Assembly (NCBI RefSeq): GCF_006345805.1
Contig: NC_043002.1
Span: forward strand, 47,058,001-47,122,000
DNA: 64,000 nt
Origin: Octopus sinensis
Lineage: Eukaryota
Direction of reading: 5' to 3'
Positions 14,860 through 62,334 of the stretch are shown one piece after another. Position numbers and translations under genes: made by a program. Each line of letters opens with the position of its first letter. The first letter of the stretch is position 1. The notes under the pieces were generated by a model. It made no database searches. It saw only the letters and a list, made by a program, of their open reading frames with translations, and was not told the origin of the DNA.

Positions 14860-14893
14860 ATGTCCTCTCATACAGGCGCATGGTGCATTGCTG
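14860..14893 (+). CDS. Host cysteine-module gene, putative coding exon 1 (MSSHTGAWCIA-G; first half of signal peptide)
   Basis: ATG at 14860 with in-frame TGA upstream at 14767; donor G|GTATGT; phase-1 end joins exon 15159 to give a signal-peptide-like N-terminus MSSHTGAWCIAGHILLLVAG/SR. Confidence 0.65.
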
Positions 14894-15158
14894 GTATGTT
14901 TTCAGACTGATTAATTCCAGTAAATTGAAATCACTTGATATAAGAGTTCCGGCGCCATTCTCGTCTACTACGATTTATGTCTGCGCTTTTATGCACTATG
15001 CTCTTATATGAGGCGTTCTAACAAGACATTCACGTTGGATATAAAGTTGGATATAAAGATTACCTTTTGATACTGGTAACATTTCTGTCGTCGCTAATAA
15101 TTATTGTATGTGTGTGTGTGTTTGTGTATCACAAATTTTTATGTTCAGAATAATACAG

Positions 15159-15264
15159 GTCACATATTGTTGTTAGTTGCAGGCAGTAGACACATGCGGG
15201 AGTTGCAAGAAATGTTCTCAATGTGCCGCAGTTCTCTAGATGCTTATTCCACTACAGATTGTCA
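15159..15264 (+). CDS. Host gene exon 2 (GHILLLVAGSRHMRELQEMFSMCRSSLDAYSTTDC-Q), type A, phase 1 to 2
   Basis: Acceptor atacag|GT (in-frame alternative AG before 15183), donor CA|GTAAGT; open frame; ends Cys + 2 nt like all type A exons. Confidence 0.8.
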
Positions 15265-16454
15265 GTAAGTATATGTATATATAAGCATAAAACATGAAAA
15301 AAGTTGACACTAAAAGAAAATCACAAAAACATATAAAGTACACTGAAAATTAAAGCACATAAAACACGCTAAAATACAAAATACACACACACACACACAC
15401 TTGTACATACAGACACCCATCCCACGTATTAATGTATACTTTTCTTTGTAATTAAACAATAACTGAATCTAAACGCAATGTATGGAAATCATGAACTACT
15501 TGATACTGAGATCCCTTCTCAACCTCCTTTGTGCAGACCGAAGTAATGCTAAGATGCAACATACTATTAACTGCGGAAACTTCCAGAAGAAAAACAAATA
15601 ATTGATTAATCAGGCTGCCTTGATGGCCACATTCAGGCTGTTTTCCCTTAGCACTTGGTATTTTATATCATACACTGAAGGTATAGAAGTATTTGTTCAT
15701 AATTATGTGGACTCTAGAGAGTGTAGAATCTCTGATGGACGAGAATACGTATTTGGCAGTAAGTCGTACGCACTTGGTCTCCATCAACTCTCATGTATGC
15801 CCACGAGAAACTGTAACATGCACAATCAGTTAGCACAATCTACTAAACCACTTGAACAGGCTGTCTAAAGGAGAGTATCCAACAGATGTTAAACCATCGA
15901 AAATAGGGAACTGTTCATATCTGAATGCAAAAACTGTTTTATCACGCTGGTTGGATGAAAGTAATGAAATGATTCAATGGTTCAGCAAAGTACTGGACAT
16001 AAGACACCTTAGAACAAAAAGAAAAGACATGAACTTCACTGAAACTAAAGAAATAACCAGTTCTAATATATTACTGAGTCAACTGGACTCTGGCCTTTAT
16101 GACCACGAACGTAGGGTTTATCTTGTGCAAAATGTTTTCAATCTAAAACCACCAGGGATAAAATTTTGAGTATCTCTCCATTTTCCCTTCAGTTAAAGAT
16201 TCGTTATGATAGGGAAAGAACATGGCAGCAAGTGGGACAAATACTTGAAGTCATAGTTTTGAACTTGCACACTGGTGGTGTGTGGCTATGTGGTCTCTTC
16301 TCTGTCCCGATAGAAAGGAAGTTAGATATACTCTTTGGGGTAGTGATGTTCATTAGTAATGTAAAGGGCTTGTAAAGGTGTGCTAACGAGCCAACGGTCA
16401 CTGAATTGCTTGGAAGCAACCAAATCTGCTTCGTATTATCATACCTTAGTACAA

Positions 16455-16850
16455 GGCGGCGAGCTGGCAGAAACGTTAGCACGCTGGGCGAAATACTTAG
16501 CAGTATTTCGTCTGCCGTTACGTTCTGAGTTCAAATTCCGCCAGGGTCCACTTTGCCTTTTATCCTTTCGGGGTCGATTAAATAAATACCAGTTACGCAC
16601 TGGGGTTGATGTAGTCGACTTAATCCTTTTGTCTGTCCTTGTTTGTCCTCTCTGTGTTTAGCCCCTTGTGGGTAGTAAAGAAATAGGTATTTCACATGTT
16701 TTTACGTTCTGAGTTCAAATTCCGCCGAGGTCGACTTTGCTCTTCATCCTTTCGGGGTTGATAAATTATGTACCAGTGAACCACTGGGTTCGATGTAATC
16801 GACTAGTCCCCTCAAATTTCAAGGCCTTGTCCTTTCTGTAGAAAGGATTA
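16455..16850 (+). mobile_element. SINE family 2 copy
   Basis: Matches 757-1150. Confidence 0.85.
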
Positions 16851-18409
16851 TCATACCATAGCATCTTTAAAAAAAAAACGGACCTTGATCAGGCCTGACT
16901 TGAGGTCGACAAGAAACTGCAACAACAGAAACAACAACTGGCCAGCTTATCACAGCTAGCAGTTAGTCTAATTTTGTGGTCAAGATGAAATGGAAGGAAA
17001 GACAAAGAAAGTACTTATCGTCACGCATAGAGCATCTATACTTGAATAGACTGATACAATGCAAATCCTCTCAAGAAAACAGTCCTTGTAACTATGAAAC
17101 TAACATAGTACAAGATTAGTATGGATGATTTCACTCTTTGAACCAGATGGTGGCTACACATCTTTCAGGACAGATAGAGAACGAAGATCAGATTCATGGA
17201 ATTAGATTGTGTTGTATACACATCCCGGTAAAAAGTGGTAGGCGACAGTCATTATTATAGACCAGTAGCCGGTCGTCAAGGTGGGGGTCGAGAGTCGAAG
17301 AGTTGAAAGTCGACAGTTCTAGTCGGTGTTTTGTGGAGCTAGCAGCGATAATAAGATAGAAGTTAGTGTATCACTATTCCGGTTCGAAGAGATACAACGG
17401 TATTCGATAACTAGTAACCACTGTGGCTACTAGCGTAAACAGCAATTACAGTACAACGGCAGTCACACATCACACTAGTTGGAGGAATCCACTTTACAAC
17501 AGGTTAGCCATTAGGAGTAAACGAATGGTTTAAAAAATTTCGTCACTTTCATTGCTACCTTGACAAACAACGAAGAAATTATACATAATCTTTCCTGCTC
17601 AATAAAGACAATGATAGTTATAAGCGTGTCCTACTGTAAATTTAGATGTCAGTGCTACAAACGAACTATGAAATCTCACAGAAATGAGGAACAAATGGAA
17701 ATAGTTTGTTCGTTAAGAATAAGTGTGTAGGGAATCACCACAGCATTAGCTAGCTTTTCAGAATAACCAATAACTATATTTTTTCATGAATACATCCCAG
17801 GTTTTGACAACGATATCAACTGATTGTTATTTTTTCCTGTAGACGAGACACTGCGAGGTAATGATCCTCAGAACCATGTGGTAAGCATAGTGTTGGAATA
17901 ACCAAACTAATAAAGTTGATATTCAGTCTCTAAATTTCCGCGATGAATTTCAACGAAAGAAAATGGAAACTGAAGAATCTTAGCTGAGGAATGTGGAGAC
18001 TGAGACTCGAGATTCTCTTTCAGTTACGATAAGTTAAAGCAACCAGTCACCATGGAGATATTCTGGTTGCATCAAGACAATACAGAAATGGCAATGGACC
18101 ACTGATAAGAGATCCAGATGAAAGGTGGAATTGGTGGATGCTCGATACAGACATAGGTTAAGCAAATCTATAATAAAATGTTCAAAATTGAACACTTCCG
18201 TCTTTATTCTAGACATAATATTATTCAAAGTATAATTTTTTTAAAGAGGTTACGGAGTTATTTGAGGGATGGTCAACTCACTCACTGTTTCTGTATGCCT
18301 GTCATTGAACAAAAAGGATAATATTTAAACTGAATGTTATAAGTAAGAAAGTAATATTGAAGGCGTCTAGTATCTGAATTTTGCTAACCGTTGTTAATAA
18401 TTTTTACAG

Positions 18410-18498
18410 ACGTGCACAGAATATTCATTTCTGCACTGAATTGCTCAATGGGCGAATAGGAAGTCGTGGAAACCAAGAACTTGATCGCCTGAAATGCA
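18410..18498 (+). CDS. Host gene exon 3 (RAQNIHFCTELLNGRIGSRGNQELDRLKC), type B, phase 2 to 1
   Basis: Acceptor ttttacag|A, donor A|GTAAGT; only the phase-2 frame is open. Confidence 0.8.
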
Positions 18499-60345: not shown

Positions 60346-60502
60346 GTTTGCTGCCACTTCAACATGGCTGTTCCACATAGAATTATGTTACTACTATTTT
60401 GATCCTGGAGGACATCTCCTCCAGCTATTTAATGGCACAATCTGTGTCCGATACTTTGCTTATATATATATATATATATATATATATATATATATATATA
60501 TA

Positions 60503-61404
60503 CTAGCATTATGACCCGTCGTTGCCGGGTCATAGTGCTAGTGCATGTATATATGTGTATATATATGTGCACATATTACATGTACATCTATATATATACA
60601 TGTACACATAAAATACAAAATACAAAGTTATTATCTTGATATCGCTAGTGATAACAATACTCAAAATATATAGCAGACTGGTATTGTAAGCCCGTCTCTT
60701 GCAATTTCAATCAATTGTATCTTGTTCTCCCTCTTGTATAGAAGATATGATATTGATATGGGCTCGCTCTAGGCAAGAAGTTGAACATTCTTTTTGCCCA
60801 TGAAACTACATGGACTCTAAGTAAGGCATGTGTAAAATTTGAATAAAATTGGTTGTGTAGTTCTCAAGTATCAGGGAATCGTAGTGGAGAAGATATGATA
60901 TTGCTGTGGGCTCGCCCTAGGCAAAAAGTTAAAATTTTTTTTTGCCGATGACACTCCCCGGACTTTAAGTAAGGCATATGTAAAACCACTGATTCAAGTT
61001 CAAGTCATTGATGCAATTTTATACCAATTGCTATATTTTTACTTTTGTTATGTTACGATAATATTATACTTTAGTTTGATTTTAATTATTACTTACTACT
61101 TATAATTCAATTGTTATTATTATTTTTATTGTTAAAGTGAAAGTATCTGACATAAAATAGAGAAACGTTTTTGTTTCACTTTTAACACGTAATACTGAAA
61201 TAGTGGAGAAGATATGATCTTGCTATGGGCTCGCTCTAGGCAAGAAGTTGAACATTTTTTTTGCCCATGAAACTACATGGATCCTAAGTAAGGTATGTGT
61301 AAAATTTGAATGGAATTGGTTGTGTAGTTTTCAAGTTTTAGGGAAACACACAGACAGACAGACAGATAGACGGACACACATTCTCAGTTTTATATATATA
61401 AAGA
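60503..61404 (-). mobile_element. Non-autonomous Helitron with three internal ~130-bp direct repeats
   Basis: Minus strand A|TC start at 61404, hairpin + CTAG|T end at 60503; repeat agaagatatgat.ttg.tatgggctcgc at ~60740, 60888, 61206. Confidence 0.75.
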
Positions 61405-61754
61405 TATATATATATATATATATATATATATATATGCATGTATGGATGTGTGTGTGTATGTGTGTGTGTGTGTATACATGCACATAAACATTCACACATC
61501 TACACATACATATAGTTACATACATACATACACACACACACACACACACACACATCAAAGTGTACACACATATCAATATACATATATCTGCCCTATCAGT
61601 AAATATAAATGTGGTATTACACAAATATAAGTGGTTTAACTTATTATTTCTAGCAATATATGTGATCGTAGCACATATAGCCACAATTACTGATGATTAA
61701 ATTTTGCGTACATGATTTATACTGCACCCAGCTGCTTACGTTAATTATAAGTGA

Positions 61755-62137
61755 TCTCTCTCTATATAAACGGCAGTTTGTCTGTGCGTGTTTCTGTGTG
61801 TCTGTTTGCTTGTACCCTCACCCTGACCACGGCTTTCAACCGATTCTGATGAAACTTGACACACACATAGCCCAATGTCATAATTCAAAACTAACGCAGC
61901 GAAAATTTTGAAAAGTTCACCCAGTTCTGAAAAATATCGCTAAATTCGACATGGGGTCGAGAATCAGAAACACAAACCACAAACTGTCTAGGGGACGCAA
62001 CTCCACCTTTTTTAACTCTCAAAAAAATTTACCATCATTTTTTTCCATTTTTTTGCTATTTTTTGGCTATAACTCTCTACAAATGCTTTATAGTTATTTC
62101 CCTTACAAACCTGAGCAACGCCGGGCGATACTGCTAG
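61755..62137 (+). mobile_element. Non-autonomous Helitron
   Basis: A|TC 5' end, subterminal hairpin cctgagcaacgccggg, CTAG|T 3' end, no TSD; terminus matches 5145-5173. Confidence 0.85.
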
Positions 62138-62245
62138 TTATCTATAAAAATATTTTAGAAGCTGACCAGAAATATATTTTATCAATCAGTAGCTGCAATA
62201 ATTGTTTACTTTTGGTTAACATATCAAGCTTTTACTCTGTTACAG

Positions 62246-62334
62246 TGGATTATCAGTTGGCATTAAGTGCTTGGAGACTGCTAAATGTCCTGTATCACAG
62301 TATATCCATGATGCTTATGCTTTTTATGGGTGTG
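62246..62334 (+). CDS. Host gene exon 11 (GLSVGIKCLETAKCPVSQYIHDAYAFYGC-G), type B, phase 2 to 1; gene continues beyond the window
   Basis: Acceptor ttttactctgttacag|T, donor G|GTAAGT; C-x5-C-x14-C as in exon 5. Confidence 0.88.

Follow-up and report, generated by a model that had tools for sequence, protein, structure and literature searches.

Octopus sinensis LOC115212988 probably encodes a fast-evolving, octopod-only surface protein of six two-exon cysteine modules

The stretch of DNA analysed here, referred to as the window, comprises 64,000 nucleotides (nt) of the 2.72-Gb Octopus sinensis genome (G000:C6:47058001-47122000). The gene that crosses it is LOC115212988, of which the window holds the middle part; with good probability it codes for a fast-evolving surface protein restricted to octopods and built of six cysteine (Cys) modules, each encoded by two exons. 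LOC115212988 is a catalogued, uncharacterised member of a lineage-specific family, without any demonstrable relation to a known domain family. An earlier note, made from the letters of the window, had described a hidden 11-exon gene for a secreted protein of five such modules. A multi-exon protein-coding gene is indeed present, as exons 3-11 are identical to those of RefSeq LOC115212988; it is not hidden, since NCBI has already annotated it under this name.

Results

The 11-exon chain of the earlier note was rebuilt from its description by a scan for open AG...GT segments with the given phases and terminal Cys. It comprised 898 nt and 299 amino acids (aa) on the + strand, with no stop codon, and all its introns were of the GT-AG type, with donors mostly GTAAGT or GTATGT. 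The motifs CKALNSY, CRSLKMMKDC and CRNLEEEYQC are contiguous in no frame, each of them spanning a splice junction, and the pieces map to 43.85, 52.47 and 54.83 kb of the + strand, immediately 3' of good acceptors. Searched against known proteins, the 299-aa model gave three matches, namely O. sinensis LOC115212988 and O. bimaculoides LOC106871163 and LOC106882236. The identity to 'uncharacterized protein LOC115212988 [Octopus sinensis]' (384 aa) was 95%. The translation of 14 exons, taken from the window and the fetched flanks, reproduces the RefSeq LOC115212988 protein (P0001) letter for letter. The gene spans 78.6 kb of the + strand (G000:C6:47054093-47132674), so that both its ends fall outside the window, which carries exons 2-11; ten of the 11 exons chained previously belong to it.

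The true exon 1 (window -3907..-3856, corresponding to G000:C6:47054093-47054144, + strand) encodes the hydrophobic signal sequence MNTIMNLISVVPFLLFA, conserved in the five full-length family members, and is located 3.9 kb upstream of the window. The start exon proposed earlier (14860-14893, + strand, MSSHTGAWCIA) was rejected, as the RefSeq protein lacks it and the aligned O. bimaculoides sequence has no counterpart of its ATG region. Exon 2 (15177-15264, + strand, 88 nt, phase 1 to 2) encodes the end of the signal peptide and the A half of module 1, and translates exactly to P0001; its acceptor had been placed at 15159, 18 nt too far upstream of the real one at 15177. The length of 88 nt is also found in the paralogue LOC115213476 and in the O. 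bimaculoides orthologue. The B half of module 1 is encoded by exon 3 (18410-18498, 89 nt, phase 2 to 1). The next modules are encoded, in the order A half and B half, by exons 4 (41017-41095, 79 nt) and 5 (43853-43944, 92 nt) for module 2, exons 6 (44885-44960, 76 nt) and 7 (52473-52579, 107 nt) for module 3, exons 8 (54039-54102, 64 nt; C2 absent) and 9 (54832-54920, 89 nt; C4 absent) for module 4, and exons 10 (58227-58299, 73 nt) and 11 (62246-62334, 89 nt) for module 5, the last of these being the final exon in the window. Exons 3 to 11 all lie on the + strand and match RefSeq exactly. Further exons downstream, a search for which the earlier note had proposed, were sought in the flanks, and three were found within G000:C6:47125513-47132674. 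Exons 12 and 13 (67513-67597 and 73021-73103 on the window scale) encode a sixth module, in place of the five proposed, and exon 14 (74586-74674) encodes the tail and the stop codon; all three are on the + strand and translate exactly to P0001.

The same layout is present in related genes. The tandem paralogue LOC115213476 has an identical arrangement of 14 exons and phases, with nearly equal exon lengths. The orthologous exons are present in O. bimaculoides, whose 13-exon model agrees in the phase of exons 1-13 and also in the length of exons 1-12. In all three genes the exon phases run 1,2,1,2 through six modules, so each module is flanked by phase-1 introns and can be duplicated without loss of the reading frame, and the strict alternation of phases 1 and 2 described previously holds throughout.

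The probability of finding such exons by chance was estimated with two filters. The loose filter, which asked for an open frame, AG/GT and a minimum of 2-3 Cys, did not discriminate, giving 23 candidates on the + strand vs 24 on the - strand. The strict Cys-spacing signature left six non-microsatellite exons on the + strand, in the order A,B,A,B,A,B, vs the 0.45 expected per Markov-simulated strand. Microsatellites of the (TG)n/(CA)n type translate to CVCVCV and give rise to false 'cysteine-rich exon' candidates. Tracts of (TG)n are located near 22.6, 32.9 and 61.4 kb on the + strand, with two more on the - strand, and a long poly-T run occupies approximately 51575-52048.

As read from its sequence, the 384-aa protein begins with a signal peptide, continues with six modules in tandem, each of about 55 aa and predicted to be alpha-helical, and ends in a tail (GAASRNTMFAVIIPVLLAVQMLEKYISLF). 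Two exons make up each module, A with phases 1 to 2 and B with phases 2 to 1. Between them, in all six modules, the inner intron interrupts the sequence 2 nt downstream of Cys3; the outer intron follows 1 nt downstream of Cys6, except in modules 2 and 6, where it is placed one codon further on. The full module follows the pattern C1-x5/7-C2-x6/15-C3-x8-C4-x5/11-C5-x11/14-C6, and the Cys spacing given for the two-exon modules in the earlier note was correct. Because the intra-module intron occupies one fixed place in all six modules, the gene structure indicates that the array would have grown by tandem duplication of a two-exon unit. Overlapping windows of two modules were given up, since MAFFT matched the stretches they had in common instead of bringing them into register, and non-overlapping module pairs took their place. 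In the resulting in-register alignment the losses of Cys are paired: module 1 is devoid of C1 and C5, and module 4 of C2 and C4. From these paired losses we infer a putative disulfide map of C1-C5, C2-C4 and C3-C6. The AlphaFold2 model of modules 3+4, based on the 18-row module-pair alignment, was all-helical, with three helices per module (predicted local distance difference test, pLDDT, 84; predicted template modelling score, pTM, 0.54).

The family was seen in octopods only. In the database of 5.8 billion proteins just seven members were found: O. sinensis and O. bimaculoides have three each, and Argonauta hians has one. The three O. sinensis paralogues are collinear and lie within approximately 275 kb of the same contig as the window, two on the + strand and one on the - strand. 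When 1.84 billion representative proteins were searched exhaustively with a hidden Markov model (HMM), four sequences were recovered. Three of them are family members, belonging to O. sinensis, O. bimaculoides and Argonauta hians, and the fourth, EukProt g1403.t1 (P0007, E 4.5e-6), is a weak outsider and the only match beyond octopods. The outsider is a 476-aa protein with five 8-Cys repeats, including C-x-C, and a hydrophobic C-terminus. Its repeats resemble module 6 in the common motif C-x-x-x-L-x-x-P...C-x-Y-[YF]-x5-C; they differ from the octopod modules in having 8 Cys and C-x-C, and the hhalign probability to module 6 is just 25%. This protein may point to a wider, undescribed repeat family.

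The earlier note had suspected a fast-evolving, lineage-specific protein, and the rate estimates agree with this. The comparison of the O. sinensis and O. bimaculoides orthologues gave a synonymous rate (dS) of 0.090, a nonsynonymous rate (dN) of 0.092, and a ratio of the two (omega) of about 1.03, and the two proteins are 81% identical vs 96% for GAS1. At the nucleotide level the exons of this pair are 91.4% identical vs 88.5% for the alignable intron sequence. A ratio close to 1, with exons only some three percentage points above introns, could be produced by a decaying or neutrally drifting locus, or by a functionless gene-prediction artefact, and no publication was found that names any of the six LOC identifiers of the family. 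Nonetheless, such an explanation is highly improbable. None of the seven models, which come from three octopod species, is interrupted by an internal stop or a frame break, and the splice sites and phases are all preserved in the three mapped genes. Moreover, all 32 Cys are invariant in every member, save for a single Cys column of P0006, a truncated O. bimaculoides model, and the chance of such invariance is P = 9e-4 vs O. bimaculoides and 3e-12 vs Argonauta. The Cys spacing is fixed in 7/7 family members. The rest of the protein is unevenly conserved: mean pairwise identity across the family reaches 82% in the B half of module 1, the most conserved part, which is 100% identical between the two Octopus orthologues, and 68% in the tail, while the non-Cys mean identity of the A halves of modules 2, 3 and 5 is 25-29%. 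As judged from these alignments, the Cys scaffold is under strong constraint and the surfaces appear to be evolving rapidly.

Hydropathy peaks at residues 4-14, the h-region of the signal peptide, and at residues 361-371 in the tail, where the small residues SGAAS and a short spacer precede the hydrophobic stretch. In its sequence the C-terminus looks like a glycosylphosphatidylinositol (GPI)-anchor signal. Of the 'secreted' protein described earlier, the signal peptide fits the hydropathy pattern, whereas free secretion is not supported, a membrane tether being likelier in view of SGAAS followed by the hydrophobic tail. A freely secreted protein, for instance a pheromone-like, reproductive or immune factor whose hydrophobic C-terminus has no anchoring role, is improbable. 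The signal peptide, the disulfide-rich modular build and the rapid evolution are all in line with it, as is the O. bimaculoides model P0002, which stops directly after module 6. This early end, however, is an annotation artefact: in LOC106871163 (357 aa; CM046606.1, L036 51090-51180) the donor of exon 13 is read through, the exon measures 91 nt instead of 83, and the model ends in 'SGK*' without a tail exon. The missing exon was not found in the 3-kb flank examined. The tail exon is kept in the other five models reaching beyond module 6, and its mean identity lies above that of most of the protein. A further O. bimaculoides member, LOC128248134 (243 aa), is a partial model.

Both full-length O. 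bimaculoides members bear the UniRef name 'GDNF/GAS1 domain-containing protein', presumably taken from the SMART SM00907 or a SUPERFAMILY signature, and the label was reproduced by none of the tests that were run. Nothing relevant was found in the literature on octopus together with GDNF/GAS1. The GDNF family PF02351 (cut-off 22 bits) gave no match at E <= 10 in proteins P0001-P0006, in the model of the earlier note, or in any module pair. The genome-wide scan with PF02351 pointed to loci on contigs C16, C10 and C27 and not to the locus of LOC115212988, and the precomputed Pfam column of the protein database lists PF02351 for true GAS1 and '-' for the octopod family. The alignment by hhalign of a 20-sequence profile (octopus GAS1 and its homologues) with the family and module-pair alignments gave a probability of 0.2-0.3%, and HMMs of GAS1 domains D1 and D2 scored from -2.5 to +0.9 bits on family proteins, as on shuffled sequences (-1.4 +/- 2.2 bits). 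The PDB search with the family profile returned no chain at E <= 10. Among the 28 Foldseek matches of the modules 3+4 model (one module pair) in PDB, no GFR-alpha, GFRAL, GAS1 or RGM chain was present, the best match having E 0.84 and a template modelling (TM) score of 0.29.

The structure of the domain itself leads in the same direction. The GDNF/GAS1 domain is defined by a characteristic arrangement of 10 Cys, including a C-x-C doublet (PMC3527400), vs 6 or 4 Cys with fixed spacing and no C-x-C in the octopod modules. The octopus also possesses a GAS1 gene proper (G000:C16:34791479-34792273), intronless and coding for 264 aa with a hydrophobic C-terminus and two canonical 10-Cys GDNF/GAS1 domains with CDC and CNC, which served as a slowly evolving yardstick; its identity reaches 96% with the GAS1 of O. 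bimaculoides and 78% with that of Argonauta. A pair of modules might be read as a single GFR-alpha domain, since M1+M2 and M3+M4 have 10 Cys each; this was rejected, as the spacing does not fit the GFR-alpha pattern, and so was a periodic tiling of that pattern, in which one Cys would be used twice according to the disulfide map of that family.

The introns of the window gene are largely transposon-derived. Intron 3 contains, at 24018-27143 on the - strand, a retrotransposon of the long interspersed nuclear element (LINE) type with an endonuclease/exonuclease/phosphatase frame (263 aa, E 9e-9) followed by a reverse transcriptase (588 aa, RVT_1 E 4.5e-31), which coincides with a rise of the GC content to 0.44 at 24-28 kb. 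A probable remnant of a DNA transposon lies in the same intron, where a 308-aa frame (28005-28931, + strand) matches an ISXO2/IS1595-like DDE transposase domain (PF12762, E 4e-21). Reverse-transcriptase fragments (RVT_1 E 6e-20 and 5e-6, zf-RVT E 5e-8) are located at 6122-7405 and 50624-51391 on the + strand and at 12851-13327 on the - strand. Just upstream of exon 11, at 62000-62150, lies a repeat of about 150 bp with at least 40 scored copies of 95-100% identity on many contigs (904 first-look candidates), which looks like a young and very abundant short interspersed nuclear element (SINE). Two frames on the + strand, 20749-21351 and 47349-47828, are 33% identical over 99 aa (E 2e-13), match no Pfam family and have in common the motif YIG...R...W..KN...WKIL...KC.LC; they may represent a GIY-YIG-type nuclease of a repeated element.

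Discussion

The features described above can be combined into a model of how the LOC115212988 protein might act. The protein would enter the secretory pathway, form sixteen disulfides, and be N-glycosylated at the NST sequon of module 6, which is invariant in the family. It may then be tethered to the outer membrane leaflet by a GPI anchor, as suggested by the SGAAS site, the short spacer and the 15-residue hydrophobic stretch. A less likely form of attachment would be a single C-terminal helix with a 7-residue cytoplasmic EKYISL tail. This single-pass anchor is kept as an alternative because the stretch LAVQMLEKYISL is strongly conserved and has a YxxL-like end, which is unusual for a discarded GPI signal. 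In either case a rod of disulfide-stapled helical modules would be displayed at the cell surface. The Cys scaffold, the B half of module 1 and the tail are constrained, and the A halves of modules 2, 3 and 5 change fast. A conserved, membrane-distal module 1 would be paired with variable middle modules. For a molecule of this kind, octopod-specific extracellular recognition or a co-receptor function appears the most likely role.

Several observations weigh against a constrained, membrane-tethered array of homologous modules. The RefSeq model of LOC115212988 was predicted computationally. Relaxed constraint at most non-Cys positions would also explain an omega of about 1. The module-to-module similarity is weak, the best hhalign probability being 70% over 16 columns, between M3 and M4 in the CKMP...Y...C stretch; therefore, the homology of the modules and their six-fold duplication rest mainly on Cys spacing and intron positions. 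The full-length AlphaFold2 model is poor (pLDDT 55), with values below 45 in modules 5-6. Finally, the conservation of the tail stretch, along with its YxxL-like motif, is unusual for a cleaved GPI signal, and the EKYISL end is atypical.

As to the nature of the modules, they may represent an undescribed disulfide-stapled three-helix domain without Pfam or PDB relatives, which arose or diverged beyond recognition in octopods, was duplicated six-fold and then three-fold, and has its A halves under diversifying selection. This proposal can be put forward only tentatively, and if it is true, the family would constitute an octopod-specific cell-surface recognition system, for example in gamete, neuronal or sucker/skin self-recognition. 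The GFR-alpha/GAS1 superfamily consists of GPI-anchored co-receptors made of helical disulfide-rich domains. It is unlikely, though somewhat less so than free secretion, that the octopod protein is a highly divergent member of this superfamily; if it were, its role would be that of a co-receptor, either for a secreted ligand or for a partner resembling NCAM or RET. Such a membership would account for the UniRef domain name and for an overall architecture as in GFR-alpha, GAS1, Drosophila Gfrl (PMC3527400) and the octopus GAS1 frame. Furthermore, the spacing from one C3 to the next, C-x8-C-x5-C-x14-C-x3-C-x7-C-x15-C, resembles that of Cys 4-10 in domain 2 of octopus GAS1, C-x8-C-x3-C-x18-C-x-C-x7-C-x10-C. 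On the other hand, the sequence, profile and structure searches, including the HMMs with shuffled controls, lent no support to it, and the defining 10-Cys pattern with its doublet is absent. GFR-alpha/GAS1 is therefore kept as the closest known kind, and the gene is not filed as a member.

Summarizing, LOC115212988 is best read as an octopod-only surface protein of six two-exon Cys modules. Octopods are known for lineage-specific gene families, and this one is a compact example, in which the duplication history is kept in the intron positions, the Cys scaffold is invariant, and the remainder is near-neutral or diversifying. If its expression is restricted to the nervous system, suckers or gonads, the protein would make a candidate surface recognition molecule, specific to octopods, that is amenable to study. 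The 'GDNF/GAS1 domain' label of the O. bimaculoides proteins, which was not reproduced, calls for caution with automatic names, and the chaining of exons from raw sequence was largely right, yet the gene it traced was already in RefSeq.

The comparison with other systems helps to place the octopod modules. The earlier note was reminded of the N-terminal domain of RGM, neuritin and DUF19; like the octopod modules, these and CPG4 are small, helical, disulfide-rich extracellular domains, often GPI-linked. This likeness was not upheld at the level of families, as none was matched at E <= 0.001 in Pfam, and the search with the model of the earlier note, the RefSeq proteins, the module pairs and 18 double modules gave nothing meaningful. 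The sole recurrent weak signal was CPG4 (PF15481), with E 0.08-0.19 and 12.7-13.9 bits vs a cut-off of 32.7 bits, in 2/18 module pairs. Other candidates were dismissed: glutaredoxin, from a single-protein PDB sequence search, was noise (E 0.92), and 14-3-3 and translin, generic helical repeats found by Foldseek with the full-length model, were discarded as meaningless (E >= 0.38). The Kazal and CHH/ITP domains have a 1-5/2-4/3-6 disulfide connectivity. They were rejected as well, since their spacing differs, Kazal is not helical, and neither has a Pfam match in the octopod protein.

GFR-alpha, GAS1 and Gfr-like proteins (PF02351, IPR016017) have a signal peptide, all-helical, disulfide-rich domains in tandem and a hydrophobic signal of the GPI type at the C-terminus, an architecture which the octopod protein, with a tail that looks like such a signal, would share. 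The octopod modules differ from GFR-alpha and GAS1 in their size and Cys content, having 6 (or 4) Cys in about 55 aa, with no C-x-C, vs 10 Cys in about 90 aa, and the intronless, slowly evolving GAS1 of the octopus is a separate gene, distinct from the modular family. In the class of mosaic extracellular proteins formed by exon shuffling, the modules are of the phase 1-1 type. The octopod module is not among the catalogued shuffled domains (EGF, Ig, FN3, Kringle and others; no Pfam match), and unlike them it is interrupted by a phase-2 intron, always 2 nt after Cys3. Like them, the octopod modules are bounded by phase-1 introns, and tandem duplication of such symmetric units could explain the array of six.

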